In this document: positions 2,559 through 52,374 of the stretch, piece after piece | Layout: each line of letters opens with the position of its first letter | How positions within the stretch are numbered: position 1 is the stretch's first letter | Origin: Mantamonas sphyraenae STR306 | Taxonomy: Eukaryota > Protista > CRuMs | Assembly (NCBI GenBank): GCA_026936335.1 | Contig: JAPMXV010000059.1 | Location: forward strand, 186,001-250,000 | Reading direction: 5' to 3' | Length of the DNA stretch: 64,000 nt | The notes under the pieces: model-generated | What the model was told of the DNA's origin: nothing | Database searches by the model: none | Seen by the model: the letters and a program-made list of their open reading frames with translations, nothing else | Made by a program: the position numbers and the translations under genes

Positions 2559-2657
2559 GGGTGCGGTGATGATGATCTTGCTACAGTGCTGAATCGAGTG
2601 TGAGCGCAAGCGCGTTCCGAAGCAAAACCCCAGCACCCAGCTGCTTTCGGAGAGTGC

Positions 2658-5600: not shown

Positions 5601-6209
5601 GTGGCATCCATGAACAAGCGAGCACGCATGTACAAAGAGGCGGGTAAAACACAATGGGCCGCGCACGCGTTCAAACACGTCAAGATCATGGAGAAGGAGC
5701 TGGCGGGAGTGGACGAGGCCAACGCAGAGCAATTGGAGGAAATCAAGGCGCGTGAGGAGGAGGCTCAGGCACAAGCGCAGGCACAGGCGCAGGCACAGGC
5801 GCAGCCGCGTGAGGAAGAGCATCCACAGCAGCAGGATGTATCAGGGGAGGCACCGTTTCCGGGCACTGTGTTGCACGAAGCGACACCTGACGCGTCTGGG
5901 GTTGTGCCTTGTGCAGCCGTGCTTGCGTGGGAAAAGGAGCAGCTGACAAATCACATTGGCAGCATCCGGGAATCGGGTCAAGAGCCGTCTGCGCTGTGGA
6001 TCTCAAAGTTCAAAGAGGTGAATGCACGACTTCGCGAAGCAGAGGCCGCCAAGGAAAGTGTGACACGAGAGACAATGGTGGAGTGGGCGGAGCGAGAACG
6101 GGCAGCGGCCATGCAAGCCAAGCAGGAGGGCAACAAGAACATGATGGTCGTTTTTGTCAAGCACGTGAAGCTCATCCAGGGGGAAGCACAGGCTCTAGGG
6201 CTCATGTGA
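2658..6209 (+). CDS. CC2D1: CC2D1/Lgd-like DM14 and C2 domain protein (ESCRT-III regulator); exons 2658-2784, 2917-6209
   Basis: DM14-like motifs (EYKRAAVTARDAGNVGYAKGLLKVA...IDESKLPPP), VPPRFHY, C2 domain ending TGGKLEVKVRLREPL. Intron GTAGGT..GCTGAC..CAG restores frame from MFGKLKRK. Confidence 0.88.
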
Positions 6210-26837: not shown

Positions 26838-27046
26838 CCCTTTGTTGTTTGCCCTCTGCGGCGCATGTGCATCGGTGTGCTTCCCATTGAAGCCCCACGT
26901 TGTTCCATTTCTCATGTCCAATTTCTTTCCTGCAGCCCATTCTCCTCCTGCAGCCTGAGGCCTGAGGCAGGCCTGTGCAATGAAAGTCCGCGTCGGCTGC
27001 CAACAAATTCAATACCCTCCACAACACCACAGAGACGCATAGCACG

Positions 27047-30000
27047 ATGCAAACACATGCTCTGCGTCGCGCGAGATCTGTACTCGCCATTGTGAGCCTT
27101 GTGGTGGCTGTGGCATGCCTGTATTCTGGTGCGTTGACATGAGTGGCCAATCCCAAAACGGTCTTGGGGCCACCCTCCCCCAAAGCGCTCCGCCCTCTGT
27201 TGTGGGGTTTCCCAACATGCTACACAGCCGTACTTGCTGTGTGTGTTCAATACCATTACCATTCCTGCGCATTCTGTTTCCTGCGTACCGACTGCATGGC
27301 GCCTGTTGCCTGTGGCACTGACACCTCATCCACCGCGTAATCCAATCCCGCGTTTTTTCTGCTCGCGCCGAAATCCGCCTCCGCACAGCCGAGGCAGCCA
27401 TCAGCAGCTTCGCTACCGGCGAAGGAACCGTTGATGTAGGCAGTATCGATATCAAGTAAGTTCACATGCGTTCCCTCCAACTGTTTGGGCCCCTCGCAGT
27501 CCGGACGCTCCTCCTCTTCAATTTTTTGCCTTTTTCGCCTCCCCGTCCCTTCCAAACGTCACTCCATCCATTTGCACCGTCGATACTTTGTGATCCGAGT
27601 ATCTTTGTACCCCCAACTTGATTTGTCGTCGCCTACATTCAACCCCACCCCCCCGTCCTCAATCAAAGGACGCCAAAGTTCACTCACACATTTTCTTGCG
27701 CGCCCGTCGCCCAGACCCAAAGAGGAGCCGTTCACTCTCGGCGCCTGGTTCAAGACAACCAGCACCGGTCGCTCCTCCATCTTCAAATGTGTCGGCTACT
27801 GGGAACTCCGCGTAGTGCCCAACGGGGCCATCGAGTTCCAGTGGACCGTGCCAGGGACGGTTACCCCCGATGCAACTTGCTCGGTGACTTCGGCCACAGG
27901 ATTCAACGACGGAAACTGGCACATGGCGGTATGTCCCGCCCCGTCTTTTCTCACCCAGATTTCACCCCGTATGCACTCTACAGCCCATTTTCATCCCTTT
28001 CCATGTTGCTGACTCCCTCCCCCCTCATGTCGTGCGTCGTCCAACGGATGTGGGTAACGACCGCGTTACATCTTCCTTTCTCCAGGTTGGATACCGCCAG
28101 AAGATCGACGACTGCGGCCTTAGCATCGACGGTGGCACTGCTGTCACCACCACGTCTGGATCTGCAGACAACGACATGGACTGGGGCAAATCATCCACCG
28201 ATCTTACCTTCCGCAAAGGACACAGCCTCGGTTTGTACGGCAATTTCGCTGGCAACACAGCCTTTCACTTTTGGCAACGTTTCTATGAGCCGCCTGGATA
28301 TCTGTACCAGGTTGCATCCCACCGCATGCACGTGCCCAATCGCCACAGTCTCGACATTAAGCGATTCCAGATTTGGTACACCAACGGTGTCTTTTCCAAC
28401 GGCGGCACAGAGCTCCAACCCGACATTGGAGAGACCATTCCCGTCACCGGCTTTGCTTCGGGTGATCTTTCAACCGCTGTCTACCCGACAACACTTGGTA
28501 TGCGGAATCCTGTCCTACCTGCCGCCCAGCTTCACAATTCCACCCACTCACACACTGTTCCTCCCCTCGCTGACCCTCCCCCAACAGCTACGTTGCCCAC
28601 AGAGATTGGAAGCACAAAGAAGGTCCTCCACGCTGATTCGAAGAATCAGATGGGCTACGTCACCCTCAGCGGCGACTGGATTGCAAGCACGTACACCATC
28701 GAGATGACGGTTATGTTTGAAAACGGCGATGGTGACGCCAAGGATTGGGTGTTTTGGGGTGGCCAGGACGCCGCCGATCTGTTTCAGCTCGGAGGCAAGC
28801 AGAGGACCGTCGACAACCGCTGGAGACCATTTTTCCGCTACAGCACCAGCCAGTGCTACGTCTCCAATGATTACCTCAGCAAAGAGGTGTTTTACCACAT
28901 TGCAGGCACTTACGACAAGGGCACGGGCACCGCAAAGCTGTACATTAACGGTGTGGAGACCACACGCGACACGGGAACAACCTGCGACTCCATCGCCACC
29001 ACTTTCAAGGGTCTTGGCTATGGCTACAACGGAGGTGTCTCTACCCCAGGAGGCCCAAACAAGATGTGGCTGTCTCAGGGCCGCCTCTGGAATGTCGTCC
29101 GCACCCAGGCCGAAATCATGGCCGGCCAGGACGTTTGGGCCCAGTACGGCAACCCGGCCCTCTCCTGCATCTGGGAATTTCAATCCGACACCTGGGATAG
29201 TGATGAACTCATTATCGTCAACACTGGAGCGCTCAGCCTCACCCTTGACCCAACTCAACTCACAAACGCCCGCTACATCGAGTACAACGCGGCCAAAATC
29301 GGAAACGATCAAGACAGGCTTCCCCGCATCTACGACACCTTTGCCGGCGCAAATGTCATCACGGCCATCTCGCCCTCAAACATTGCCTGCAACACCCCTC
29401 AACTCACTCTCACTGGCGCAACCTCGGGCTCCACAAAGTGGATTGCCTTTGCAACCGACGGCAACTGCGGAACAGCAAGTCGCAAGTCTCCCACCTCTCT
29501 CTCGGCCACCGCCTCACCCAATCTCAGCGCCCAGATTACCCCCGAGGGTACCTACAAGCTTTGCTACAGCATTGACGGTGGACTCACCTGGAAGCAGCAA
29601 ACCACGCCGTCTGTTCTCGTTGGCGAGGACATGACCAACTCTCCCGTCACCGCTGCAAACTCACCTGTCTCAGACACATACAATGTCAGCATCCTTGGTC
29701 GCCTCAACGGCCAGTCGCACGCCATTACCTGCGCGAAAAAGTTTGTGTGCACGTTCAGCAGCGGCCTCTCCGGCTCCGTGGACGCCGTCCAGGTAGGCGC
29801 CACAGACGAGTACCGTTGCACGCGTGCAATCACCACTCCGGGTACCTACCAGGTTTCTGTCGCCTTTGACGGCCAGGCCGTCACCAACGGCGTCAAGAGC
29901 TTCACCATGAGCGTCGGCCCGGCAAGCACGGCAAGTGACGTCCAGGCCACGTATGACGACGCCGTGGTGGCAGGGGCGACGCGCACCTTTTCCATCACCA

Positions 30001-33000
30001 GCAAGGACCAGTTTAGCAATCCCCGCAGTGGCACAGGCGATTCGTTCGAGGTGCGCGCTGCCATTTCCGGAGGCGCCATCCCAGACATTGTCAACGCCGC
30101 AACCAACACGGCCAGTGGTGTCTACCAGGGCTCCTACATGCCCACACTTGCCGGAACGTACACGGTGTCCGTCTCGGTTGGAGGCCAAACCATCGTCAGC
30201 AACAATGCCGTCTCGGTCAGTGCCCAGACAACCATCAGCCACGCTCTGTCCACATACGCACTCTCGGCGTCCACCATTGCCGCCGGCGCAACCGTAACCC
30301 TCGATGTCACTGCTCGCGATCAGTACACCAATCTCGTGCCCACACTCGGCACATCGGCATTCCAGGCCACCTGGACGCACAAAACCGAGGGTGGACTTGC
30401 TCCGGTTGTGGTCAACACAGGCGCCTATGCCTCCAACAAGTATCCCATCAGCACATCGGCAATCACCGTGGCTGGAGACTACACACTCACCGTGAAACGT
30501 GGCGGGACGGACATTGCCGCGTCGCCCCTGGCTACCTTTACTGTCACCAACGCCGCCGTCAACGCAGCAAACAGTCTTCGGTCGGGCTCGACCGGTGTCG
30601 TCATCAACACAGCCAACCGCTTCACCATCACCGCACGCGATGCATACGACAACATCATTCCCGGGCACACGCTGACCGCAGGCTGCACATTCACCGGTGG
30701 GATCACAGGCGCCGTGTCAAACGGCCCCACCGACGGTGTCTACTACTGCGACTACACCCCAACCGCCCTGGGCACGTACACGGTCTCTCTCACCCTCAAC
30801 AGCAATTTGGTCACGGGTAGCACCTTTTCCCTCGTTGTCGACGCGGGTCCGCACGACAACTCAAAGGTGCTTGTGTTTGGCGGAAACCTGCGATGGGTCG
30901 AGGCAGGCAAGCTTGGTTCCATCCAGCTCCAGTCGCGCGACTCCTCGTCAACCAACCGCAGTTCCCACGACCTCATCACATCCATACAGGCCATCCTTGT
31001 TCCGTACGCAGGTGGCAACAACGTCACAGGCACAGTGGCCAACGCCGCCTCTGGAGGTCTTTACGACATCACCTGGAACGCTACGATTGCCGGTGCCTAC
31101 CAGTTGCACCTCACCAACGAAGGCACCCACATGGCAGCCAGTCCCTACCCGTACTCGGTGACCCAGGCCCGCAGCCATGGGCCGGCCGCCACCCTGCTGT
31201 CGGGCACGTTTCCCTCCTCACACGTCGCCGGCACCACACTGCCAACATACGCCCTGCAGCCGCGTGATCGCTTCCTCAACAACATCAACCGGCCGCCCCT
31301 CAACTGCCACTTCCACAAGGAGGACACCAGTGCTACTGCCAACTACGCCCTGATCAATCCGCTGACCACCTGGCCCGGCACCCTCATGGCCGTCTCATTC
31401 TGGACCATGACTCGCCACAACGGCGGCACAAACACGGTCGTGGGACCTGTCTACGCAACGTCCGCAAGCTCTGCCGCGTTCAAACTGCTCAACCCGGCAA
31501 ACGTACGCATGGTCATCAACGGACAGTCGCTCACCATGCCGTCAGCGCCCGTCATCACCGACGGCAAGTGGCACCACATCCTTGCCCAGTACAACGGCGG
31601 CACGAAAGAAGGGTGAGATCTTCCTGGACGGCGTCAGCTACGGCGAACAAACGTTTACAGCATCGGCGGTGCTCACGTCGGGCATGCTCAGTCTGGGTCG
31701 TGACATCACAGGAACACCTGCTGCGCCTGCTTTTGATGGTGCAAATGCAGCCCGTGCCTGGCTCGACGACCTCGCCATCTGGGAGCGCTCGTTCACAGCC
31801 ACCGATGTGCAGAAGATCCAGTACGCGCAGTTGCGTGGAGACGAGGCCAACCTGAAGAACTTGTGGACGTTTGACGAGTGCATCGTCACACCGATCCGCG
31901 ATCTCAAGGGCGGCATGCACCTCACAGGCAACGGTGCCGACACAAGCACAGCCGGTACAGCCCTTTATCTGCAGGCAAGCGCCGCGTCCTACTCGACACG
32001 CGGTGGCATGACGAACATGCCGACCACTGAGATCACCTTGGGTGGTTGGGTCAAGCCCACCAGCTCAGCCCCTGGTCTCTCCACCATCATCAGCTACAGG
32101 TGCACTGGTGCAGGGTGCTCCCCTGGCAACTATGGAAACGACATCCTTCTGTGGGGCAGCACAGCATCCATCCATCTGTGGATCTCGGACCAGAGTTCCG
32201 GTGGATTCACAGCAGCTGCCGTGCCTGCCAACCAGTGGACGTACCTCACAGCCAGCTGGCGCAAGAGCGACGGGCGCGTGCACATGACCAAGAATGGTGT
32301 GACTGCGGTAGACACCAATGTTGCGGCCCTGGTCAACAGGAATATCCCGGGATCAGGTACAGTCATGATCGGCTGTGACCAGGATAATACTGAAGGACAA
32401 CAAGGCAGCGGCGGTAGCCAGTGCTGGGATGGCGATCTCTCCGAGCTGTTCATGTGGAGAAAGGAAGCAAGTGTGGGCGACATCCAACACTGGATGAAGT
32501 ACGGATTCTCGGGCAATGAGGCCGACCTGACCTTCTACTATCCCATGAGCGACCATGATGGACGCATGTTTTACGACGCCGGACCCTACAAGCAGCACCA
32601 GCGCGTGCAATCAGGCACATGGGCTTTTGTGGCCGGCGTCGACAGCACGAGCCACAAGGATGGGCTGCAGTACACGCTTTCCACGACGCCTGCGCTCAAC
32701 ACAGCCTCCACCCTCGCCCAAGAAACCAATGTCCTGTTCACGAGCAAGGTTACAGGCGGTATCGGCACAGAAGCAAGGAGCTATGCCCTCACGCTCACCG
32801 ACAAGAGCGACTTTGGCGCAAACGCAGCCAACACGCCGCGTGCATACACGATCCTGCCCACCGTGGCACAGGGTGCCGCCAGCACCGCCGCAGGCCCTGG
32901 GCTCAGCGCAAGCACGGCCGGTACAAACGCGCACGTCATCCTGACCGCCCGGGACCAGTACAACAACGAGCACACCGACAACGGCGAGACAGTGGCAGGT

Positions 33001-36000
33001 TCCCTCACACATCAGACGTTTGGCGCCATTGTCGTCCCCATTGTCGTCACCAACGAGGCGGCTGGCCAGTATCGCGTCACCTACAACGCCACAAAGTCGG
33101 GTGTGTACACGTTTGCGCTGACCATCCGTGGCGAGAACGTCAACAGCTTCCCGCGTTCCGTCACCGTGTCACCCAACGTAGCGTTTGGCGGCGAGTGCAC
33201 GGCTGCTGGGGCGGGTCTGGCCAACGCCGTGGCCGGTGTTCAAAACACCTTTTCGGTCACTGTGCGCGATGCGTTTGGCAACCAGCTGACAACGACGTCG
33301 TCCACCGTCACTGCCGCGCTCACCAAGGCCGGAGCACCCACCGTCAACGCCGTCAAGACCGCCCAGAGTGCAGGCGTGTACACCATGACGTACACAGCCA
33401 CGAAGGCGGTCAACTACGACGTCAACGTGCTCGTGGAAGGCCAGGCGGTGCGTTCCAACCCGTTTGTCATTGCCGTCACGCCCAACGCCGTTGTGGCCAC
33501 AAAGACAATCGTGTCTGGCACCGGTGCCACGTCGGCCACGGCGGGCGTGCAAGCCACCATGACGGCCACGCTGCGCGACACGTACGACAACCAGCTGACG
33601 CAGTCGACCGAGACCGTGACAGCTGCACTCAGCACACCCAACGTCGCCGTCAACGTCGTCGCAGCAGGCAACGGCGTGTACACGCTGACGTACACGGCCC
33701 AGGTGGCCAAGTCGTATGTGCTTGATCTGCAGGTCAACACGGTGTCTTTTGGCCAGACTGTGGAGCCGCTGGTTGTGGCTGGACCCGTCAAGGCGTCGGA
33801 GAGCGTGCTCACGGGCGCAGGGCTGTCCAGCACTGTGGCAGGAGACATTGCCACGTTCAACGTGCAGGCACGTGACCAGTTCCAGAACCTCCGCACAGTG
33901 GAGAGTGACACGTTCACCGCCAACATCACGCACGCAACGGCAGCATACACGGTCGACGGCACAGTGACGCCGGGCACAGCAGGGTCGGGTCAGTACAATG
34001 TTGCTTACAACGTGACACTGACTGGAAGCTACACACTGCGCGTGTACGGCAACGGAGAGCTGGCGGGCACGCGCACGGTGACGGTTTCGCCGGCGCAGCT
34101 TACAGTGGCTTATTCGCTGCCTGTGGGCAGTCTCGTGCTTGACAACCAGCCGAGTGTGGCTGGCACCACGTCTTCGTTCACGGTGCAGCTCAAGGACAAG
34201 TTCCACAACAACCGCACCACGTTTGACACGATTGTGGCGCAGGTGCAACACAAGGTGCACGGCGCCAGTGTCCTTGCTTCGGGCCCCACCTTGGGCAACG
34301 GACCAGCGGGAAGCGGCCAACGTACTGTGACTTACCGTGCCACCGTGTCGGGCAACTACGACATCTTTGTGCGCAACAATGCTCAGACGGTGCAAATCAT
34401 CGGCAGCCCGTTCACCGTCCTCGTCAACCCGGACGTCGCCGTGGCCTCAACCAGCTTTGCCTACGGAAGCCAGCTGGCACGTGCCGAGGCAGGGAAGGCC
34501 AACAGTTTCCAGGTACAAATGCGCGACCAGTTCCAGAACAACATGACCAACGGCGGGTTGACTCTGTCGGCCAGTCTGGCCCACCAGGGCTCCTCGTACA
34601 CAGCCACCGGCGTCGCCATCTCTGGCGGCAGCAACGGTCTGTACACAGTGGCCTACAACGCCACGGTGGCGGGCACGTACACGGTCAGCGTGACGTACGG
34701 CGGATCGCTGGTTTCTGGAAGCACCTACTCGCTTGTGGTGGACCCCACTGTGACGCACGGCGTCAACAGCGTGGTGAATGCGCCTGTGGGCAGCGCCACT
34801 GCAGGTGTGTGGAAGACATTCTCGGTGCAGGCACGCGATGCGTTTGGCAACACGCGCACAGTCGCCACAGACACCCTTACGTTCACCAGCACGCACCCGA
34901 CAGGGGCCTCTGCCGTGGCCAACCAGTGGTTGCCCGACGCAGGCAACAGTGGCACCTATTCACTGCGCAGCAACCACACAGTGTCTGGCACGTGGACGGT
35001 CAACGTGCTGGTCAATGGTGCAGCAGCCATCGGCTCCCCGTTTTCGCTTGTGGTGAACCCGAACATTGCGTACGGAAGCACCAGCACACACGACGCGACT
35101 GCAGCCGGACAGGTGGTGGCGGGATTCACGGCGATGTGGAATGCGCAGGTGCGCGATGCATTTGGCAACAACCGCACCACAAACGATGACACTGTCACGG
35201 CTCAGCTGACACACCAGACGCAAGCCATTGCGGCCATCGACGCCACGGTGGTCAACAGCGGTGGCAGCTCCACGGCACGCTACCAGGTCAGCTACACGCC
35301 CACACGCTCCGGCGTGTACAACATCAATCTGCGTGTCAACGGCATGCCATTTGGCACAAGTCCGTTCACCACACTGGTGCTGGCCGCCACGACCAGTGTG
35401 CCCGACTCCATTGCCTACGGCGCAGGACTGGCCAACACTGTGGCCGGTGCGGCGGCCGAGTTTGTCGTCCAGGCTCGCGATCGTTTCCAGAACAACCGCA
35501 CGGTTGCCACCGACACCTTCTTGGGCGAACTGGTGCACAGTACAGCGTCTACCGCGATGTTCAATGCCACAGTCACAGCACACGGCAGCATTGCAGGAGC
35601 GTATCGCGTGCAGTACAACGCCACCGTCAGTGGCGCATACTCTGTGCGTGTGCGCTCTCTCAATGGCACGCACATCTCGGGCAGTCCGTTTGCTATGACC
35701 ACTGCTCCGGCTGCCATCCACCCGCCCTCCAGCGTGGTGGACAACAGAGCCTGGGGAGTGCTCAGCACCGCACAGGTGGTTGTGCAGAGCCGCGATGCGT
35801 TTGGCAACCTGCGCAGCCTGGGTGCCTCGGACAGCTTCAATGTGCGTGTCTTTGTGGCATCTGGCGAACTTGGCGTGACCCAGACAGCGGCCGCAGCAGG
35901 CTTGTACACCTTTGAGTACTTTGCAACCACGCCAGGCAACGTGAACATCACTGCGCGCACGAATGGCCAGATTGTAGGCGCGTCAGAGTGGGCGGTGGTC

Positions 36001-39000
36001 CAAGCGCTGGGCCCCGCAAACTTTTCTGCAATTGTGCCTGATCTGGGAACCGTGGCGGGCGGCACGCAGATCACACTCACCGGAACCAACTTTGTCAACA
36101 CGCCCAAGATGAACGTGATTGTGGGCGGTGTGTCGTGTCCCATGACCTCGTTTGTGAGCAGCACCTCGATTGTGTGCACGACACAGGCGCATGGCACGGT
36201 CGGCTCCAAGGGGATCACTGTGAGCAACAACGCAGGCGTCAACACGAGTGCGGCAAACGCACAGTTCCTTGCCCATGCCACAGAGGTGGTGTCTCTGTTT
36301 CAGCCCAACAACGGCCCCGTGTACGGACGCACAGTGGTGACGGTGACGGGCAGCAACTTCCTGAACAGCCCCTATCTGAACTGCAAGTTTGGCAGCGTGG
36401 TGAGTACCACCGCGCCCACGTTTGTCTCGTCCACCGAAATCCTGTGCACATCTCCTGAGAATATTGTGGGCGACCTTGTGTTTGCCGTGGCGAACAACGG
36501 CCAGCAGTTTGTGCCGGCCGTGGCAGCGGCGGGGTTCTTCAAGTACATCGAGCCTTTCTCGCCGCTGTGCCGTCTGAAGACCGAGCTGCCTGTGGGTCAG
36601 CTGGAGCGGCAGTCCAAGGGTCAGACCTACTTCCCCAACCTGGCAAAGGGAGCAAGCACGGACGGCACGTCGCCTGGTGCTGACATCAACCTGCCCGGAG
36701 GCATTGTGGACGACGACCGCTGCTGCGAAAAGACGCCTGCCAACCAGGGCAAGTACTGCGGAATCCAGTTCCAGCGCCAGTTTGTGGCCAACATGACGGG
36801 TCTGGCACAGGCTGTGGTGAAGCTGCCTCGCCAGGCATTTGTCAACGAGTTTCTGACCACGTGGTTCCGCCCCTGTGCCAACCAGCCGCCTTACTACTAC
36901 GTCGACTATGACGTGAGTGGCAACGGCACATGGACCAACCTGATCACACGCGTGACAAAGTCGGACGCCATCAGCCTCGGAACGCAAAAGCCGTGTTTCT
37001 TCGTTCCTTCCGATCAGGAGGACGCATCGATTTGCATCGACTTTTTGAACAGCGAGCTGCGCGCCACACACTTCCGCATCCGGTTCAACAACACCGAAGG
37101 CGTGATGGGCAAGTTTGGCACCACAACGGACGGTGCCTGGCTGTACGAATTCGAGGTGCACGGTATTTACACGGACACGCCCGAGTTTCTGGACTTTGTG
37201 AATGACCTGTCGGCATGGCCTTCGCAACCCAGCGTCGCCAGCACGGCTATCCCGACGCTGCAGCTGCGCACGCTGAACCACCAGCGCGAGATCCTGCTCG
37301 CCAACGACACGGCGACACAGACAGCCACGGTGCGTCTGCTGCGCGGCAGTACGTTGACCGATGTGACTTCGCTGTACCTGGCAGGTACCAAGACCGTGAA
37401 CCTTGTGGGCGGTCTGGCCACGTTTAGCAACCTCGAGCTCCGCTCGCCGCCGGCTGATCTGTACCGCCTGCAGTTCTCCACAAACAACCTGCTGGTGGAG
37501 GTGCACACCAATCTGACTGTGGTGATTGGTCCTGCGTACGAGGTGCGCCGCACGAGCGCAAACCCAGCCGCCGTATCCACGGCCGCTCTGGTCAACATCC
37601 CTGCGGTTGAACTGCGCCTGTATGACATCAGCAACAGCTTTGTGGGGAGCACGGACAACAGCACGCGCAATGTGAGCGTGTCTCTGTCCAGCCAACCCGG
37701 TGGAAACCCGAACCCGAACGGAGTGCTGATCGGCACCCTGGTGGGGAACATGAGCGCGGGTCTGCTGCAAATCAGCGACTTGCAGCTGGTAAAGCCCGTG
37801 CCCGGAGTGTACAACATCACGTTGAGCATGGACAAGGCTCTGACAGGCGGTACGGAGAGCGTCAGCGTGGCCATCACCATCCAATCTGGCGTCCCGTATT
37901 CACTGGCACTCAATCCGGGCGTTACAGGCACCTACGCGTCGTCTTCTACCGTGGCGGTGAACCAGATCGGCGTGCGTGTGTTGGACATCTCGGGCACGCA
38001 GACGTCGGTGACATTTGGTTCGGCCATCAAGATCGCCGTGTCGACCAACGGCTCCCTTGTGCTGGGAGGTGCAGGTGCCAGCGGGTGCACAGTCAGTAAT
38101 GGTGCGTGCACAGTACCCATCATCACACTGAACAAACCCGTGGCCGACACGTACCTGCTGTCGTTGACGTCGTCGACAGTGCTCAATGCAACCACGGTGT
38201 TGACAATCAACATCGGCAGCCCTGTCGAACTGCGATTCCGCGCAGCCGCACAGCAGTCTCACCCTTCAGTGGGTCTGGTCAACCTGACGAGCATTGTTGT
38301 GGATGCGTACGACATTGGCGGCACGTTTGTCGGAGCCACAGACGGCTCGCGTACGGTGGTTGTGAGCAGCCTGAACGGCACGGCTCTGACCATGCAGGGT
38401 ACTCTGTCATCCACAATGACAGCAGGCACTGTGGACTTCAACGCCATCCAGCTCGTGGCCCCGTCTGTGGGAACGTATGTGCTTTCTTTCGCCTCGGCCG
38501 GGCTGTCGGGACTGCAGAGCACGGTGGAGATCACTGTGGGTCCTGCAGCCAAGCTGGAAGTGACCAGCAGCACCGAAGTGGTGGTGGAGACATTCACAAT
38601 CAACAACCTGCCGAGTGTGAACGTGCGTGCGCTCGATTCAGGTAACTTTTTTGTGGGCACCTCGGACACGGCCAACCGAACCGTGGTGGTGACCGTGTCG
38701 CCGTCGGGCAGTGGACTGAGTGCAGGAGCAACTGGATACATGGTGAATGGCACGGTTGTGCTGTCGCAGCTTGTGCTCAGTTCGCCACAGGTGAAGAATT
38801 ACACAATGACAATTTCGACGGCCGGCCTCCAGTCCACGTCGCTGAAGCTGGCTGTTTTGGGTGGCAACCCGGTGAGCTTGGTGATGTCGCCCACCACAGT
38901 GGGCCCCTATTCGAGTGAGAACCTGGTGCGCCTTGCAAACATGAGCATGTCGTTGCTGGATGCTGGCAACACGGTGGTGGAAGACGCTCGCGCTGTCAAC

Positions 39001-42000
39001 ACCATTGCACGCCTGTTTGCTGTCAACTCGTCGAGTGCGGCCACAGTTGTGGGCACGACGACCATTGTCATGCAGGGCGCCACGGTGGTGTTCCACAACA
39101 TCAGCCTGTACCGTCCCAAGGCGGACGCCTACACGCTGATCTTTGGCGTTGGCGGCATGGCCAACGCCACCGTGGATGTAACCATCCAAGTGGGTGCGCC
39201 ATACTCGTTGCGTGTGACGGGCGGCTCGGGAGCCGTGTTGCCGACTCGTGTGACTGTCCAGGTGCCCAAGAAGGACTTGGAGGTGTTGGACGTCGGAGGT
39301 ACGCTTGTGACGGCGGGTCAACTGGCTGTGAATGTGTCCACGAGTGTACCCTTGGGCGGCCTGGTCCAACGCACATCGTTCCAGGGCGTGGTGTCCTTTG
39401 CTGGTCTGACCATGGACAAACCGGCCAACCAGACGTACGTGCTTACGTTTTCGTCGACGGGTCTGTTGAGCGCAACGAGCACCCTGGTTGTGACTCCGGG
39501 TGTGCCGTACGCTCTCTCCAGCGCCGAGGCTGTGATTGGCCCGCTGCCGTCTGTGGCCAAGGTGAACGTGCATGCGGGTCTGGTGTTGAGTGTGCTGGAC
39601 ACAGCCAACAACGTTGTGCCCAGCACCTATGCAGACTCGCGCACCATTGCTGTGGCACAGACGAGCGGTGCCGAGAGCGGCGTGTTGGGTGGCGACCTGA
39701 GCGTGGCTCTGGTAAACGCCTCGCAGGGTGTGTTTGACAACATCACGCTGACGGCGCCGTCTGTGGGCAACTACACGTTGCAGTTCACCAGCGCAGGGCT
39801 GTTGCCTGTGGATGTCATTGTGCGCATCAAGGTGGGTCCTGCGGTCACGATGGCAGTGCTGTCGCCTGCGTCGGCAACTGCATCGGTGGCAAGCGCCGAG
39901 TTTGCGGCGCTGCCCACTGTGCACGTGCGTGCGTACGACGCAGGCAACACTTTTGTGGCGGCATCGGATATCGGCACACGCCCCGTGTTGGTGTCCATTG
40001 ACAATGGTGCCGTGCTGAACGGCACCACAAGCGTGTCCATGGTCGCAGGCGAGGTGCAGATCTCGGGTCTGTCGATCAAGTTTGCGCCGCGTGGCACGTA
40101 CACGCTGACGGTGTCGTCGGCTGGGCTGACAAACACGTCGATTGCAGTGACGGTGACGCCTGGCAGCACATACAAGCTGAGTGCTGCCAATGTGGCCACG
40201 CCAAACGTGGTGTCGTTGTCCTCGTCGCTGTTTGGCACCGTGCGTCTGTCGACGTTGGACGCAGGCTCGGGTGTGGCCACGCTGGGCAACACCGGACGTG
40301 TGGTGAGTGTGAGCCTGAACGATACGAGCCAGAAACTGGTTGGCAACACGACAGTTGGGGTGAGCGCTTCGGGAGAAGTGAACCTGGACGGTCTTGGCTT
40401 GGCCGCTCCGCGTGTGGGGGCCTACCTGTTGACATTCACCAGTGCGGGTGTGCAGCCTGTGACTCAGGTGGTGACCGTGAGCACGGGACCGCCTGCATCG
40501 TTGTACCGCCTTCCCGGGCAGCCGACGCCGTCTGTGCGTACGGTGGCCAACACGCTGATCCCACCCATCAACATCCGCTCGTTGGATGTGGGCGGGAACG
40601 TGGTGCTGGTGGACAGCAGCCGACCGGTGTCTGTCAATGTGGGCAACGGCACGGCCGGTTTGGGTGTGGCCAACACGGTGTCGGGCGACACCGAGTCGAT
40701 GGTGAACGGCAACGTGACGTTTGGTGCGTTGGTGCTGAGCAGCCCGCCTGCTGGTACCTATGTGCTGCGCTTCTTCACGGGTGGTCTCACACCAGTGGAT
40801 GTCGAGTTGTTTGTCAGCATTGGTCCCGCTGTGAGCCTGAATGCCGTGACGAGCGGCATCACCGCACAGCCGTCGGAAGTGCTCCTGCAGCTTCCATCGT
40901 TCCAGGTGCGTGCTGTGGACAGTGCCGGCGTCCCCGTGGGTGGTATCGATGTGCCCAGCACGCGCACTGTAAGCGTGTGGGCATCGGACAGCCGCATGAG
41001 CGTTCCTGCGACACTGTCGATGCAGAACGGCGTGGCACAGGCAGTCAACATGAGCATTGCGCGCCCGCCTGTGGGTCTGTATGTGGTGACATTTGGCACG
41101 CCTGGTCTGGCCAATGTCAGCGTGACATTCAATGTGACGCTGGGAGCGGCAATTGAGCAGCGTGTCGAGAACGGCGGCGTCCAGTCACTGGCCTCCTCAG
41201 TCAACACGGTTGTGGGCAACATCACCATTGGTGCGTACGAAGCCGGTGGCGCTGCTGTGAACGCTTCGGACAACCAGGTGCGCTCTGTGCGTGCGTACAG
41301 TTCCACGCTGTCGCTTGGCGGCGCGGTTGTGCACCAGATGGTGAATGGCCGCGTGGTGGTCACCGGCTTGATTGCACACAGCCCTACACAGGGCTCGCAC
41401 ACCATTGTGTTTGCCAGTGCAGGTTTGAGCAACACTAGCGTGAGCGTGACGATTGTGCAGGGCGCGCCTGTGAAGCTGACTGTGTTGGCGTACACGACCA
41501 CACCGCATCCGTCTGCGTTCACGGTGCCTCTGAACACGATCCGTGTGCAACTGCGTGACGCAGGAGACGGATTGACAACGCTGGGTGCCGGACAGTCGGT
41601 GCAAGTGCGCACGGATGCAGCCGTGCCGCTGACGGGCACCAAGACCGTGAACGTGACCGGCAACGAAGCGACGTTCTCCTCGTTGCAGTTGAACGCCCCG
41701 AGCAGCGCCGCGTCTCCGTTTGTGCTCGAGTTTGTGGGCCTGGGTGGTCTCAGCGGCGTGACTCTGGACAAGACGCGAGTGTTTGTGTCCACGGGTGCGC
41801 CTGTGCGCATGTCGCTGCCCGCTGGGCTGGATCAGCGTCTGTACCCGTGTGCCGATCCGGTGACGGTGGTGCCTTTTGAGGTGCGTCTGTTGGATGCAGC
41901 CGGAGTGTTTGTGGGCACGGTGGACAGCGCCAACGTGCGTCCGCTCGTGGGCGTGAACATGAACAGCAGCAGCGTGGTGGCATCTGTGCCAAACAGCCTG

Positions 42001-45000
42001 CAGCTGCGTAACGGCACCGTGACGGTGACGGGTCTGACGCTGGCGCGCCCGCGCGTGGGCGTGTATTGGTTCAATTTCACGTCGCCCGGTCTCGGCCAGC
42101 TCCAGACACGTGTTCAGGTCGTTTCGGGCCAACCATTTGCGCTGAGGGCAGCCTCGGCTCAGCCCGTGTCCGCGCAGAGCGCACGTGATGTGTACCTTCC
42201 GCCGATCCGCCTTATCGTGACGGATGTGGGTGGCAACAACCTTGGCGCAGCCGATCCGGCGCAGCGCCGCGTGTCGGTGAGCGTCGTGTCGAGTCCCGGG
42301 TCGTACAACCGAGCCACCGACTCATTTGTGGGTCTGGGATTCGGAGGCCGCGTGGAGGTTTTCAGCGAGAACGGAGAAGTGACGTTCAGCGAACTTGTGC
42401 TGACCCGGCCGCGAGTGGGTCAGATCCTACTCCGCTTTGAGACGCAGGGGCTTGTGTCTGCCTCTGTGAACGTGTCTGTGCAGACAGGATTCCCCGAGCA
42501 GGTGGTGCTGGAAGGCAACAGCACACTCACGGTAAAGTACACTGGCTCAGCCAACGGTGCGGTGCTTGTCAGCCCGCCTATCAAGCTGCTGATTGTGGAT
42601 GCTGGTCGAGGTGTGGTCCCATCTGCGCCTGCAACACGTACGCTGGCACGTGGCAACCTCACTCGTGTGGCGGGCTCGCAATCGCGCAACCAGTTCCTGG
42701 CCATCGACCAGGAAACCGGAGCTGTTAGTGGCGGAATCATTCTGGGAGGCACGCAGGTGCGTGACTTTGTGAATGGTCGCACGTCGTTTGACGATCTGCT
42801 GTTGCGCGCAGTGGAGGGCCCATACTTTCTGGAGCTTAGCCCCGACGGATTTGGTCCGGTGATTGTCAATGTGACTGTGCTCGCTGGGCCGCCCGCGTCG
42901 TTTATTGTGCTGTCCAACGGATCGCGTTCGTACAACAACTCGGGTCCGCTGGCCGAGCCGCCGACGTTCCGTCTGCTGGATCGCCTGGGCAACCAGGCGA
43001 ACCAGACGGGTGTGGTTCTCCTGTTGGACCTTTCGCCATCGGTGCGCTCGCTGCAGGGGACCAGCCAGGCGAGTGACAGCAACGGCGTCATCCGCTTCTC
43101 CAGTCTCGCGTTTGTTGGAAAGTACGGCTTTTCGTTTTCGTACACGATCACCTCGAATCCGAACATCGGGTCACTGACCATTCCCAATGCGGTGACTGTG
43201 GATGAGTGCAACGTGGGCAACGCAAACACGGTGTCGGACGAGCTGGGCTATGGCTGCAAGTGCCAAAAGGGCTATTTCCTGGTGGCCCAGTTTGGCTCGT
43301 CGCTGACATGCCTCCCGTGTCCCACAGCGACCTACCAATCGCTGATTGGCCAGGTGGAGTGCACAGCTTGCCCCGTGTCGATGGACACGGAGGGCAAGGT
43401 GGCGGTGACGTCGCAGAGCGAGTGCAAGTGCATTGACGGGTTTTATGAGCGCACCGAAAACGGTGAACGCAAGTGCCTGAAGTGCACGCCTGGAGCCGAG
43501 TGCCGTCAGGGTCAGACAATCCAGGCCTTGCCGGGCTTCTTTGGTGTACGCCCAGGAACAGATCAGTACATCGCGTGCCCTGAACCAGACGCGTGCAAAG
43601 GTGGTGTCAACAGCACGTGCAACATTGGGTACCGTGGCCCTCTGTGTGCTGTGTGTGAAGACGGCTATGGCAAACTCGGAGAGAAGTGTCTGATTTGTGG
43701 CGACAACGCAGACAACTGGGTGCTGGTGGTGCTGTTCTTCACTGCCGCCACGGCCATGCTGCTGTTCCTGATTCGCACGTCTACAGGCGAAAAGTCGCAG
43801 GCGTCGATCATGATGAAGATTGCTCTGAACTACATGCAGGTGCTTGCGTTCATTGGCGAGTTCCGCCTGAATTGGGCGAGCGAGACGCAGGGTCTGTTCA
43901 GCACAGGCAACTTGGCGCTGTTCAGTCTGAAGCTGCACCCCATCGACTGTGCGACGGGCTGGACCTACTTTGACCAGCTCGATGGCTACATGATGTTCCC
44001 TGTGTTTACCGTGTTTGCGCCGTTGGTGGTGTACGGTGGCACGTACCTGTGGGCCACGCGCATCGCCAAGCTGTTTGGCATGAAGTGAAGCGGCCCGAGC
44101 TGGAGATTGAGCGTGAGGTGTTCCGCGTGAACAACGAGATGGATCGCGACCAGCTGCTGAACAGGATGAAGGAACGCATGGAGAAGGGCCAGAAGGCGAT
44201 GGAATCGGTCAAGAAGATGCCGTTTGCCAAGGCGTGGAGGTACCAAATGCGCAACATGTACGCACTGACGCTGATGGTGGTGCTGTTCATTGCCCACCCG
44301 ATGGTGTCCAAGGCAGTGTTCCAAATCTTCAACTGCATCGAGCTGGAAGGTGGAGCACGCTACCTGGAAGCAGACATGCGCATCGACTGTACGAGTGAAA
44401 AATACCTGTACTATCTGAACACATGGGGCTACCTGATGGTGTTTGGATACTGCATGGGTGTGTTGCTTGTGGGTTTGGGCATCCTGATGAAGAACCGCAA
44501 GCGGCTGCGCCAACCTACAGTGATGGCACGCTACCGCTTCCTGTACGACGGGTACGCCAAGAAGCGCTACTTCTGGGAGATTGTGATTATGACGCGCAAG
44601 CTGATGGTGGTGGCGATCATTGTGCGCTGGAGCACGGCGCCGCTGACGCAGCTGTATGCCGGTCTGTGGATGTGCATGGCGGCCCTTGTGCTTCATCTGT
44701 ACTCGAAGCCGTTTGCAGAGGCCGAGGCGACACGTCTGGAGACGATGAGTCTGGGATCGACGACGGTGACGCTGATGACGGGTCTGATGTTCTACAGCTC
44801 CGAGACGACGGAGGAGGACCACTATCTGATCAGCATTGTGCTGCTTGTGCTGAACGCAGGCACCCTGGCCATGCTGGGACTGGTGATTGTGCGTGAGTTT
44901 ATCCGTGTGGCGCGCAGCAAGAAGATTGTGCAGGAGATGGAGGCGAACCTGGCAAAGCAGCTGGAGGAGAGGCGCATCCACAACGAGAAGATGGCGGAGC

Positions 45001-45980
45001 GCGAAAAGTTGCTGAAGGGATTCGAGGACAGTACACGAGAGAAGAAGGAAGCGATGCGCCGTGGCCAAGTGTCGACAGTGGTGTCGATGGAAAGGCGGGA
45101 GTCGATCCGAGGCTCGCGAGCGGACATTGTCAAGAGTCTGATCGAAGCAAACGAGAAGGGGCCGAAGAACATTGCGCATTCGCTGCAGGAGCTGGAATTT
45201 ACACTGGAGGAACCACCGTTGCGTTCGCGCTTCTTCCGATTTGCAGACACGTACTATGGCGAAGGAGGCGAGGGCCACAGCAGCCTGAGCGAAGCGCAAA
45301 AGGGTCTGTGGCCTGCGCTGCGCAAGTTCATGAATGCTGTTCACGAGCATCCGGACGAGACCGAAAGGATTGCAGAGCTGGCAAACGAACTGGTGGAAGA
45401 GTACCTGGACGAAGACGCGGACAAGTACGTGGCACTGGACTTTGGAAAGGAGGTGGAGATCCTGACGAAGCTGAACAACGGCGTGGTGACAGACAGGCTG
45501 TTTGACGCGATTGTGCTGGCACACTTCAGGACAGCGTTCCCTGGCTTCCAGGAGAGCATGAAGAACCTAAGCGAAGGACCTTCGATGGAGGACCGTGTGG
45601 AGTCCATGAAATCTGCGCTGTCGGACACGAAGTTGCGTCACAAGTTTGACCACTTTGTACGCACGCGCAGTGATCGTCCGCCACACGCATTGCAATTCTG
45701 CAAGGCGACGGTGGCGTACCGTGCCGGATTCGACGGCTGGAGCGAGGAGGAGCGGCACGAGCAAGCGATGGAAGTGCTGCACCGATTCTTTGACGACGAC
45801 GAAGACGAGTACCTGGATATGGTGGACTTTGGCACGCTGATGGAGCAACAGCAGCAACTGGACCGCATGGAGATTGCACGTGCAGACGCGTTTGACGAGC
45901 TCATGCAATTGTTGTTTGTGAAGGAGTTTGTTGTGTGGCGCAAGGAAGTGCTGGAAGTGGGTGAGTTGGCGCTGTTGTGA
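27047..45980 (+). CDS. Giant cell-surface receptor-like protein (~6,050 aa): signal peptide, LamG/pentraxin domains, filamin-type Ig repeats, 2 IPT/TIG, second Ig-like array, Cys-rich repeats, ~9 TM, coiled coil, 2 RGS-like domains. Exons 27047-27128, 27389-27455, 27715-27928, 28086-28497, 28588-45980; frameshifts near 31606 and 44085
   Basis: Spliced N-terminus MQTHALRRARSVLAIVSLVVAVACLYSAEA-AISS; FNDGNWH and ITDGKWHHI LamG motifs; recurrent ARDxFGN; GGTQITLTGTNF; C-x-P-C-P repeats; YRFLYDGY..FWEIVIMTRK. ORFs 28032, 31582 and 44049 overlap mid-domain. Confidence 0.85.
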
Positions 45981-46094
45981 TTGGAATGGACAGGAACTTT
46001 GGATTCATTTGCCATTCACAGCATGGGAATGCGTTTTTGCGTCGGCATGGCAGGGCACGGGGAGAGGCGCAGGCGTAGCCAGCAGAATTCGAGA

Positions 46095-49000
46095 ATGTCG
46101 CAGGCATTGGATGTTGCAACGATGCACATGTTTGTGCGTCGTGCACTGCAGCGCATTATCGAAGAATCCAACTCGCGGCGGTTTGCAAGCCTAAAGAGCA
46201 GCTGCCAAACGGCGTTGGTGGAATTGGACGCGGCTGTGAAAGAGCTGGCCGAGCAAACGGTGGACCATGAGTACGTGCGAGGAAAGGAGGGGAGATGGAA
46301 ATGGGCGAGTGAGAGTAAAGAGGAGGTGTGGGTAACGGTTTGGGACAGGAAACGAGGTGTGGTGGCTGTTCAGGAGGGAGTTTCCCACGAGCAGAGATGG
46401 CTGACCCCGAAGCCCGGCCCTTTTCGCGACGCATCGGCCCGTGTACACAGGCAACTGGACACATTGGCGACAATCTACCTGGACCCTCTGCGCATAGCAA
46501 CTCAGTCGAACCAGGCCAAGTTCATGGTTGTGTCCCTGGATTGCTTTCAGAAGCTGATCGCGTACGGGTACTTCCGAGGGTTGGCGCCGGACCAGGAGAA
46601 TCCCAAGATGAGCCTGATGGACTCTGTGATTGAAATCATCTGTGCGTGCTTCGACCACCCGGACGAAGCGGTGCAACTGCAGATCATCAAGGTGAGGCAC
46701 AGGTGGCAGGTGTCGTGTGTGGGAAGGAGCGCAGCGGTTTGGAGAGGGCCAAGGATCTTGTCTGGCAGGAAAAGTGCTGGCTGCAGCGAGCCGGAAGGTG
46801 GAAAGGCCGCCAAAGGGTGTCCGGCGGAAGGAGCTGTGCAAGTGTGGTGCGAGTGTGGAGGGTATGTGTGGACCACTGACACACGAGGTGTGTGCACGAC
46901 GTATGGATGTGTGTGTGTGGGTGCGTGGGTGTCCAGGCGCTGCTGACGGCGGTGACTTCGCCGACGTGTGAAGTGCACGAAACAAGCCTGCTCAAGGCCG
47001 TTCGCACATGCTACAACATCTTCCTGGTGAGCAAGAACCTGGTGAACCAAAAGACAGCCAAGGGGGCGCTGCAGCAGATGATCAACCTGATCTTCCAGCG
47101 TTTGGAGACACACATGGTGAGTGGATCGGGGGGATCGGCCGGAGCGGGGTGCCCTCCGCGCGCGTTTCCCGACGCACAACGTGACACAGAGCAGCAGTAG
47201 CGAGAAATGGCCACATTCCAGGCTCGGAAACATGCACTTGCTGACACCTCATGCGCTTTTTGGTCGGGATCGGGATCGGATATACGCGTGTACAGGCGAC
47301 TTTGAGCAAACCGACGACGGCGGCCGAAGGCAGCAGCAGCGCGAGTGCGTCTGAGGACACGGTGAAGCAGATGGTGGACACAGCGGCTGCAGCAGTGGAG
47401 GCTGCCAATGGAGAGAGCAGTAGCGAAGCAGAGGCGGAGGGTGGAAGCGGAAGAGGAAGCAGCAGCAGCAGCAGCAGCGGCGGCAAAGAGGGCGAAGAGG
47501 GCGAGGGCAGCGACGGCGCCGAACCTGCGGCGTCTACGGACGAGGAGCAAGAGGTGAACGAGGCGGGACATGTGAAGGGCAAGTACGGGTGGTGCATTGG
47601 TAAGTGAAGACGGCGGGAGGCGCACAGAGGGGCGCCAGGCAAAGGCACGAGAGAGGAGGAAGGAGTAGGCCGAGGCGAATTCTGACACGGCGCGCGTGGG
47701 TGGGCGCCGAGCGCAGTGTGCGGCAAGACGGCAAACATGTATTGCCAGCAAACGAACAGGGCAGTGTGTTCCATGGCATGCAAGGCGCAGAACCTGGAGA
47801 ACGTGTTGTCTGGAGCGGCACAGGAGGGAAGCGCGGGACAGAACGAGCAGGCGGACAAAGAGGTGGACTTTGGCCACGTGGTGCAGAAGGACGCGTACCT
47901 GGTGTTCAAGGCCCTGTGCAAGCTGTCGGTGAAGAAGATCCCCGAAGGATCGCTGAGCGACTCGATCGACATGAAGTCCAAGCTGCTGTCGCTGGAGCTG
48001 CTGCTGGACCTGATTGAAAGCAGCGGGCCGTTCTTCCGCACAAGCGAAAAGTTTGCCCAAGCCATGGAGCAGCATCTTTCGCCGGCACTGGTGAAGAACA
48101 TGCTGTCGCCCATCGGCCCCGTGTTCAACCTTGCGTTGAACATCTTTTATTCGCTGCTGATGAACTTCAAGGTGCAGATGAAGACCGAGATTGGCGTGTT
48201 CTTCACCAACGTGCTGTGGATCCTGGAGAGCCCCAACACAAGCCTCCAGCAAAAGTGGATTGTGTTGCAGGTGCTGTCGCGTGTGTGCAACAACCCGCAA
48301 ACCATGGTGGATATCTTCCTGAACTACGATTGCGACCTGGACGCGCTGAACCTGTACGAACGCATGGTCAACGACCTGTCGCGCATTGGCCAGGGCATCC
48401 ACGCAAGCGAAAAGTGGGTCACTCCTGAGCAGGAAATGGCCATCAAGGAGCTCAGTCTCCAGTGCCTGGTATCCATCCTGCGCTCGCTCGTCGAGTGGAG
48501 CGACGAAATCCGCAGTCTCGAGGCTGACAAGCCGGGCACCAAGGAGTATGAGGCGGAAATGGCACGCAAACGAGCAGAGGAACAGGGCGGGGCTGCAGAC
48601 GACGCAGACGACAGCATGGTGGGAGGGGACACCTCGTCCTCTTCCTCCTCCTCGTCCTCCTCCGCTTCCTCCTCCTCCTCGGCGGCAGCAGCGGCAGCTG
48701 GAGGTGGAGCCGATGAGTCGCAACAGCCTCTGGACGACGTGGAACTGACACAGGAAGAGAGCGAACGCGAGCTGACGCCCAAGGAAATCGAAGAGCTGAA
48801 GGCGCGCAAGATTGCGCTGCAAGAAGGTATCAAACGGTTCAACCGCAAGCCGAAGAAGGGCATCAAGTACCTGCAGAGCGAAGGCCTGCTGGGAACGACG
48901 CAGGCGGAAATCTCAAAGTTCCTCAAGACGACAGAAGGATTGGCAAAGGCGCAGATTGGCGAGTACCTGGGCGAAGGCGACCGGTTCAACATCGAAGTGC

Positions 49001-52000: not shown

Positions 52001-52374
52001 GACAGGAAAAGGGTGCGACGACGGCAATGGCAGTGATCCTGTTTCAGATGGTGGGCAACGAGTCGACGGCAGAGAAGAAGGCGCTGGCAGAGCCGCGTCT
52101 GATGGCGCTGATTGAGCAGGTGCTCAACGCATACATCTACGACACATATCTGATGGATGTGAACGGAAACCGTTCGAACATCTGGGTGCAGACGGTGGTT
52201 GTGATCCTTTCTGCGTTGTCGGATATGGACGACGACCAGTTTGCCGAGTATTGGCCACGCTTTTACACGCTGGCGGGCGAACTGGTCCTCAGCGACAGCG
52301 TGGAGGTGCGACAGCGCCTGGTGCAGCTGTGGAAGCGCACAGGGAGTATGTGGAACGTTGTGGACAGCAAATGA
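46095..52374 (+). CDS. ARFGEF1: BIG/Sec7-type large ARF guanine-nucleotide exchange factor (5 exons)
   Basis: DCB ([18 protein letters not shown]|ALL), HUS (NYDCD), Sec7 ([31 protein letters not shown]), HDS ([22 protein letters not shown]). Confidence 0.96.

Follow-up and report, generated by a model that had tools for sequence, protein, structure and literature searches.

Does a protist possess a giant surface receptor that reaches G proteins through RGS domains of its own? The question is raised by 64,000 nucleotides from Mantamonas sphyraenae STR306 (GenBank assembly GCA_026936335.1, contig JAPMXV010000059.1, positions 186,001 to 250,000, forward strand). This whole stretch is called the window in the following, and positions are counted from its first letter. 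Between 27047 and 45980 its plus strand contains three large open reading frames (ORFs; 27888-31616, 31411-44088 and 43974-45980). A first reading, made from the sequence alone, had joined them with small upstream exons into one adhesion-type receptor ending in two RGS-like domains; the motifs it quoted are present in the frames. In our analysis the receptor is one gene encoding a single polypeptide. The fusion of a nine-helix membrane module to a pair of RGS-fold units is real, conserved, expanded and apparently undescribed. Judged from the alignments, the tail has lost the canonical residues for GTPase-activating protein (GAP) activity and has a conserved acidic loop in their place.

One gene and a single polypeptide

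The gene model has five exons and four introns on the plus strand and yields 6,055 residues with no internal stops. Contigs from four sequencing runs were compared over 26950-32850 only, so that the RNA evidence ends at 32850. The X3 contigs skip four stretches, each GT..AG (27129-27388, 27456-27714, 27929-28085 and 28498-28587), and X3 was therefore treated as spliced RNA; the X1 contigs are unspliced over the 5' part of the gene. With X3, transcription and splicing are seen for the 5' third.

Exon 1 (27047-27128) carries the start codon and most of a predicted signal peptide with a basic N-region and a hydrophobic core, called by inspection of sequence and hydropathy, the A-E-A end of which is encoded in exon 2 (27389-27455). 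The spliced contig spans 27105-27127 and the exon 1 joint, not the start ATG. Exon 2, exon 3 (27715-27928) and exon 4 (28086-28497, without a match to any Pfam family) have spliced joints in X3. All three small upstream exons of the sequence-only reading were right, but it had overlooked the in-frame intron of 90 nucleotides at 28498-28587, the GT..AG joint of which is present in X3. Exon 5 (28588-45980, 17.4 kb) is supported by reads in its 5' part, by paralogues and by the orthologue, and holds two one-base breaks.

At the first break an extra base at 31608 is missing from both the unspliced X1 and the spliced X3 contigs; it is therefore an assembly error, and the first two ORFs join. The X2 contigs end at 31606 and resume at 31609, a pattern typical of heterozygous sites, and presumably the assembly retained both letters of an A/G variant. 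This assembly was made with FALCON from PacBio reads with Illumina polishing and is diploid (25.06 Mb, 78 contigs, GC 59.19%; PMC10492846). The extra base cuts a LamG domain precisely, with profile positions 3-92 of PF13385 before it and 94-151 after it. At the second break, near 44081 in the cytoplasmic loop following helix 3, the window is one base short in alignments with the paralogues C43 and C5; here the basis is the paralogues, not reads. The M. plastica orthologue P0020 (6,035 residues, labelled as a complete transcript ORF, from the same Trinity gene as P0002) is colinear and continuous through both sites: its residues 310-1252, 1252-5413 and 5405-6035 match the three frames at 36, 47 and 56% identity. 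Spliced contigs, the split LamG domain, the paralogues and the orthologue together rule out three separate genes, and the protein of about 6,050 residues first proposed stands. Database searches were run per exon or per frame; the exons were joined locally only for length, frame, hydropathy and the scan for a GPCR proteolysis site (GPS), with an X at ~44081.

It is highly improbable that the base at ~44081 is truly missing and that the copy is thus a pseudogene or a truncated allele, its protein ending behind helix 3 without the RGS part. Such a reading could appeal to the fact that this break is known from alignment rather than from reads, in an assembly that had already been polished with Illumina data (PMC10492846). 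However, the break at 31608 turned out to be an assembly error, dN/dS is well under 1 beyond ~44081, and the orthologue and paralogues are unbroken. The architecture holds regardless through C5, C70, C7, C32 and M. plastica.

In the N-terminal head (27047-32850), run contigs and assembly differ by 20 nonsynonymous and 9 synonymous codon changes, which is about the neutral expectation in a small, incomplete sample that may contain assembly errors.

The RGS pair and the membrane module

The C-terminal 276 residues match the RGS profile PF00615 with an E-value of 3.6e-10 in two stretches. Taken alone, the first unit (45177-45560) reaches 1.4e-3 and the second (45570-45977) 3e-5, which is above the cut-off; among the paralogous RGS-like units, 9 of 17 match the profile. 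The best profile match of the tail in the PDB is EhRGS-RhoGEF (E 3e-4). A phmmer search of the tail against the PDB gave noise only, and the NCBIfam search gave no relevant families. Folding the last frame as a single sequence reached a pLDDT of only 41; for paralogue C43 (93% identical over the module), AlphaFold with 31 aligned relatives gave a model from the membrane part to the C-terminus with a mean pLDDT of 86. Its tail domains gave VIA matches to SNX13 (Z 10.2), EhRGS-RhoGEF (9.2), axin (8.7), RGS3 (8.4), RGS4 (8.2) and GRK1 (8.1). For the first unit Z is 8-10 to RGS domains, and for the second it is 8.1 to the GRK1 RH domain. The top nine rows (Z 7.9-10.2) consist of eight named RGS/RH chains with root-mean-square deviations of 5-9 A and one axonemal chain. 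In Foldseek the first rows are RGS1, RGS8, RGS2 and RGS4, at a probability of 1.0 and with weak E-values of 0.03-0.2. A chance match to RGS is ruled out by the profile, structure and family evidence. These data, the model included, show that both tail units adopt the RGS fold, as had been proposed.

In front of the tail lies the membrane module (43717-44900). It matches Pfam TRP (PF06011; E 1.6e-8, 34.2 bits against a cut-off of 28.5) over positions 272-411 of the 426 of the profile, i. e. within its C-terminal third; P0003, a protein of the orthologous family, matches over 148-418. The C43 model contains nine membrane helices, the last of which continues as a single helix of 77 residues before the two helical domains. 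In the window a long helix or coiled coil followed by a disordered linker occupies 44900-45160 (helix at model residues 401-477, low pLDDT at 478-498). The number nine comes from this model read alongside the sequence, as hydropathy by itself picked out no more than the four strongest helices. It agrees with the earlier proposal of about nine helices of TRP- or Flc-related type, and the layout is that of Flc/Pkd2 and CRMP proteins. From the signal peptide and the odd helix number, the C-terminus is predicted to be cytoplasmic.

No solved structure matched the membrane bundle convincingly in the structure search (Z <=7.2). The bundle resembles Atlas structure predictions for a family that is broadly spread among eukaryotes and varied in its tails (TIR, START, EF-hand); relatives of the module occur in diplonemids, oomycetes, ciliates, green algae, haptophytes and cnidarians. 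G-protein-coupled receptors (GPCRs) are absent from the meaningful structural matches, and no Pfam 7tm family matches the window protein; the 7tm_3 profile gave no match, but neither did its control. A pattern scan of the joined model found no GPS-like motif, Pfam GPS and GAIN gave no match, and a Cys-rich module stands in this place instead. Membership in the GPCRs or adhesion GPCRs is ruled out by the nine helices and the lack of a GPS. Three giant relatives (P0021, P0022 and P0023, one of them from Diplonema papillatum) carry an EF-hand-like D-x-D-G-x-G loop after the last membrane helix instead of an RGS tail.

The receptor belongs to a large family. A search for paralogues with the same membrane module gave 110 matches in the M. 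sphyraenae genome, and a profile of the RGS-like units matched 30 places. In at least 16 genes one or two RGS units lie directly behind the module, several of them in unbroken frames of 3,400-10,900 residues. When the RGS-unit profile was searched against 1.84 billion representatives, the four strong matches (E <=3e-32) were all from M. plastica; the next were at 1e-7 or weaker and mostly ordinary RGS proteins. In Diplonema, oomycetes and other assemblies the module has giant relatives, all of them without RGS. Word-index searches for mid-sized relatives gave 1 and 6 matches and are insensitive, so that a similar fusion may exist elsewhere. In the module tree all RGS-bearing rows fall into a single Mantamonas-only clade (99/95), which also contains members without RGS. 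The RGS label needs three changes within this clade, each of which may be a gain or a loss. From these comparisons the fusion is older than the split of M. sphyraenae and M. plastica, and outside Mantamonas none was seen within the sensitivity of the searches.

Synonymous divergence from C43 (window 43198-45977) is 0.13-0.22 in the Cys-rich and membrane part and 1.4-1.5 in the RGS tail, and a central domain of 207 residues is 99% identical. The copying of stalk and membrane parts is therefore recent, whereas the tails have remained distinct.

Some RGS-like sequences lie apart from this pattern. Acidic units without a nearby match to the membrane module are found at C49:555296-555607 and C46:193880-194245; possibly they are joined to another type of receptor. 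C70:151823-152536 and 156408-156587 are partial additional copies of the RGS tail of the C70 receptor.

Loop residues and the possible role of the tail

If the RGS fold is present, is it still equipped to act on a Galpha subunit? Across 29 receptor units three motifs of canonical RGS domains were compared. The E-E-N motif before helix 4, which we take to be E87/N88 of RGS4, is missing in both window units and variable among the 29. The position equivalent to Asn128 holds Ala in unit 1 and Asp or Met in unit 2, its commonest states among the 29 being E, D, A and G; the Asn is missing in essentially all of them. The D-x-x-x-R motif near helices 7-8 is unconserved. The earlier suspicion that the catalytic EN motif was degenerate thus extends to all three motifs. 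What is strongly conserved is an acidic patch in the loop of the Asn128 equivalent (D in 28 of 29, D/E in 28 and D/E in 27), with the consensus (Y/F)(L/F)D(D/E)DxDxY(V/L)x(V)D(F/Y)G, which reads YLDEDADKY in unit 1 and FFDDDEDEY in unit 2. In RGS4, Asn128 sits in loop 6 and binds Galpha (PMC7572916). Both units share 39-46% identity with the M. plastica orthologue and show dN/dS of 0.18-0.41 against paralogues; by this measure they are under purifying selection.

These residues bear on the possibility that the protein is a true GAP receptor like Arabidopsis RGS1 or the 7TM-RGS (seven-transmembrane) proteins of Naegleria, in which the acidic loop would replace Asn128 and a ligand would relieve or enhance GTP hydrolysis. 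The overall logic would be that of described receptor-RGS fusions (PMC9283941, PMC3971589), and p115-RhoGEF owes its GAP activity to an acidic EDEDF motif (PMC9700851), although this motif lies upstream of the RH domain and not in loop 6. Traces of E-E-N are kept in a few units of other members, and none of the three Galpha subunits of the genome has lost the switch I glycine. Nevertheless we consider this reading unlikely. Asn is not among the four commonest states at the Asn128 equivalent of the receptor units, whereas it is found in 6 of 11 soluble RGS domains of M. sphyraenae, which largely retain the canonical motifs, and in 4 of 5 canonical domains from elsewhere; the E-N and D..R motifs are lost as well. 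The genome also has about five cAR-like GPCRs, Ric8 and intact soluble RGS proteins. With GPCRs and Ric8 present, a self-activating Galpha or an RGS-only system is not required. The analogy with Arabidopsis RGS1 drawn in the sequence-only reading is weakened by these findings and by the lack of a 7TM fold.

A tentative interpretation, which we favour with some doubt, is that the tail docks activated Galpha, as a scaffold or with weak GAP activity at most. The protein would be a plasma-membrane receptor for contact or glycans, in which the lectin-like heads would sit on a rod of ~35 Ig-like repeats (in the order of 150 nm if extended) and could bind a surface, be it the substrate, a bacterium taken as prey or another cell. 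Such binding, or a pulling force, might be transmitted through the Cys-rich module into the nine-helix bundle, whose last helix would lead straight to the coiled coil bearing the RGS pair. With the acidic loop placed where Galpha is normally touched, the pair would dock activated Galpha, as RGS-homology domains do, and G-protein signalling would be localised to the contact point rather than catalytically switched off. Docking is preferred because the conserved patch lies in the Asn128 loop, the units are under purifying selection, and the three Galpha genes (C38, C10 and C59), all with intact switch motifs, have basic switch regions. Some RGS domains are non-GAP scaffolds (PMC3971589). Since the GAP residues are lost and an acidic loop is conserved, a docking scaffold is likelier than a GAP of the Arabidopsis RGS1 type.

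Several points weigh against docking. The E-E-N and D-x-x-x-R motifs are also gone and variable, which is equally compatible with a different partner. The RGS tail is absent from many close paralogues, and thus the membrane module can work without it. The ligand and the mechanical coupling are purely conjectural, and binding of Galpha is putative. The surface sensor signalling through RGS modules that was first proposed therefore stands in part: single chain, RGS fold and a non-GPCR nine-helix module agree with it, but the canonical Galpha contact motifs are gone.

In the hypothetical case of a different partner, the RGS fold would have been repurposed so that the D-x-D-x-D loop binds Ca2+, a polybasic protein or a lipid, and would regulate or cluster a Pkd2-like Ca2+ or mechanosensitive module. 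This seems somewhat unlikely to us, although it would be consistent with the loss of every canonical Galpha contact and with the strongly acidic character of the units (charge -13 per 100 residues versus -5.6 for soluble RGS domains). The D-x-D-x-D spacing occurs in a loop between two helices, the best structural match is the RGS domain of SNX13, and relatives of the module elsewhere bear other tails (EF-hand, TIR, START). Furthermore, Pkd2 of fission yeast, which belongs to this module's Pfam family, lets Ca2+ pass when stretched (PMC9727806). Yet the glycine at EF-hand position 6 is missing in nearly all units, and so, usually, is the spacing to position 12; channel activity is putative for every protist member of the module, and the conserved patch lies on the Galpha face.

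Returning to Galpha as the partner, a wider view, which we consider rather unlikely, is that Mantamonas has independently built G-protein receptors that are neither GPCRs nor 7TM proteins: giant contact sensors on a Pkd2/CRMP-type module, with an RGS tail that regulates Galpha by a new acidic-loop chemistry, possibly gated by Ca2+. If true, this would be the first direct link between a widespread orphan membrane family and heterotrimeric G proteins; so far the fusion is known from a single genus, and its signalling role is putative.

Two further genes touch on this subject. The Galpha gene at C59:181506-182727 lies 3.3 kb left of the window and ~30 kb from the receptor gene, which may be chance. 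At C57:310037-313423 an RGS domain ends a sequence that, read by eye, resembles GBA2 (non-lysosomal glucosylceramidase).

Ectodomain, neighbouring genes and known systems

Behind the signal peptide the ectodomain consists of three LamG/pentraxin domains among ~14 filamin-type Ig domains, two TIG domains, the 207-residue domain, a stalk and the Cys-rich module. Its Pfam matches are LamG3, Pentaxin, Filamin (14 stretches), TIG (two), Ephrin_rec_like and DUF7630. LamG/ConA-like domain 1 (28653-29117; PF13385, E 1.8e-10) is followed by the first filamin-type array (29640-31280; PF00630 four times, PF23616), LamG domain 2 (31335-31812), interrupted by the extra base and matched by PF13385 in two halves, and LamG/pentraxin domain 3 (32011-32493; PF13385, PF00354). 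The second filamin-type array (32860-35900) has ~10 repeats of ~105 residues, according to ten PF00630 matches and the motif spacing, and leads to the two IPT/TIG domains (36020-36540; PF01833 twice).

The Cys-rich domain of ~207 residues (36550-37170) is a hallmark of the subfamily. It has no Pfam match, and no other ectodomain segment is as well conserved: its identity to the M. plastica orthologue is 74%. About 30 genes carry it, with an almost constant spacing to the membrane module; among them are all 16 RGS-bearing genes, where it lies ~7.5-8.5 kb upstream. A lead from the language-model Atlas (0.89) hints that it may have an F5/8 type C (galactose-binding-like) fold, and it is a candidate site for ligand binding or assembly. 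The membrane-proximal stalk (37170-43190; ~2,000 residues) gave weak beta-sandwich matches in Pfam at most; motif spacing in multiples of ~110 residues points to ~18 beta-rich repeats of ~110 residues. The Cys-rich juxtamembrane module (43198-43700) matches Ephrin_rec_like (E 1.7e-8) and DUF7630 (E 1.4e-5).

Directly behind the receptor stop codon begins a BIG/Sec7 Arf-GEF gene on the plus strand (45981-52374; DCB, HUS, Sec7, HDS and BIG2_C). On the minus strand below 26920, ~130 bases from the receptor ATG and head to head with it, lies an INTS11/CPSF3L-like metallo-beta-lactamase gene, identified by eye.

In incomplete literature coverage we found neither a published description of a nine-helix module fused to RGS nor literature on CRuMs with RGS and G protein. 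The architecture had first been thought undescribed. This holds for the nine-helix/RGS fusion, but adhesion-type receptor-RGS fusions are known in Naegleria (PMC9283941) and TM-RGS fusions are found in most lineages (PMC3971589); hence the general idea of a receptor-RGS fusion is already known. In Mantamonas, and thus in the CRuMs, which are sister to Amorphea, such a fusion arose again on a non-GPCR scaffold. The nine-helix module is found widely across eukaryotes, and no structure of it has been solved; the invasion-essential CRMPs and fungal Pkd2 either carry it or resemble it. Its natural joining to an RGS fold hints directly at a G-protein output for this module, and the small soluble domain pair together with three Galpha subunits makes an assayable system.

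The closest parallel in design is the 7TM-RGS family of Naegleria fowleri (28 members), an expanded multipass family with adhesion ectodomains (EGF, lectin) and C-terminal RGS domains in an organism that has GPCR-like genes too (PMC9283941). These proteins have seven helices and GPS motifs, and GAP activity has been demonstrated for their RGS domains, in contrast to the nine Pfam TRP helices, the lack of a GPS-like motif, the ectodomain of >5,000 residues and the tandem degenerate RGS units of the Mantamonas receptor. Arabidopsis RGS1 and other 7TM-RGS proteins likewise place the RGS domain at the membrane beside Galpha (PMC3971589, PMC9283941), but Arabidopsis RGS1 has a small ectodomain, seven helices and a single catalytically active RGS domain acting on a self-activating Galpha. 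The Mantamonas receptor is thus comparable to 7TM-RGS proteins in its working at most and is not a member, as helix number, family and GAP residues differ.

With the CRMPs of apicomplexans and ciliates it shares a large variable ectodomain, ephrin-receptor-like Cys repeats before nine TM helices and a cytosolic C-terminus; CRMPs are proposed contact sensors controlling organelle exocytosis (PMC9670195, PMC9815656), and heterodimers of their modules are predicted (PMC9815656). An RGS tail of CRMPs is not reported in PMC9670195. The core feature of CRMPs, Cys-rich repeats directly before nine TM helices (PMC9815656), is present in the receptor, and the likeness is one of layout; the module searches returned ciliate and other protist members, with CRMP sequences not among them. 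Fungal Flc/Pkd2 proteins have in common with the receptor a Pfam TRP match that exceeds the cut-off, a predicted set of nine TM helices and a coiled coil behind the membrane domain (PMC9727806; bioRxiv 10.1101/2022.08.11.503631), but their ectodomain is just one small Ig-like domain that binds lipid, and their tail is disordered. For the tail itself the nearest counterparts are the non-canonical RGS-homology domains of SNX13, axin, GRK and RH-RhoGEF proteins, which likewise have the RGS fold but lack part of the canonical catalytic residues. Those, however, are soluble or sorting proteins in whose matches the DxDxD loop signature was not seen, whereas in Mantamonas the domains are fused to a giant receptor.

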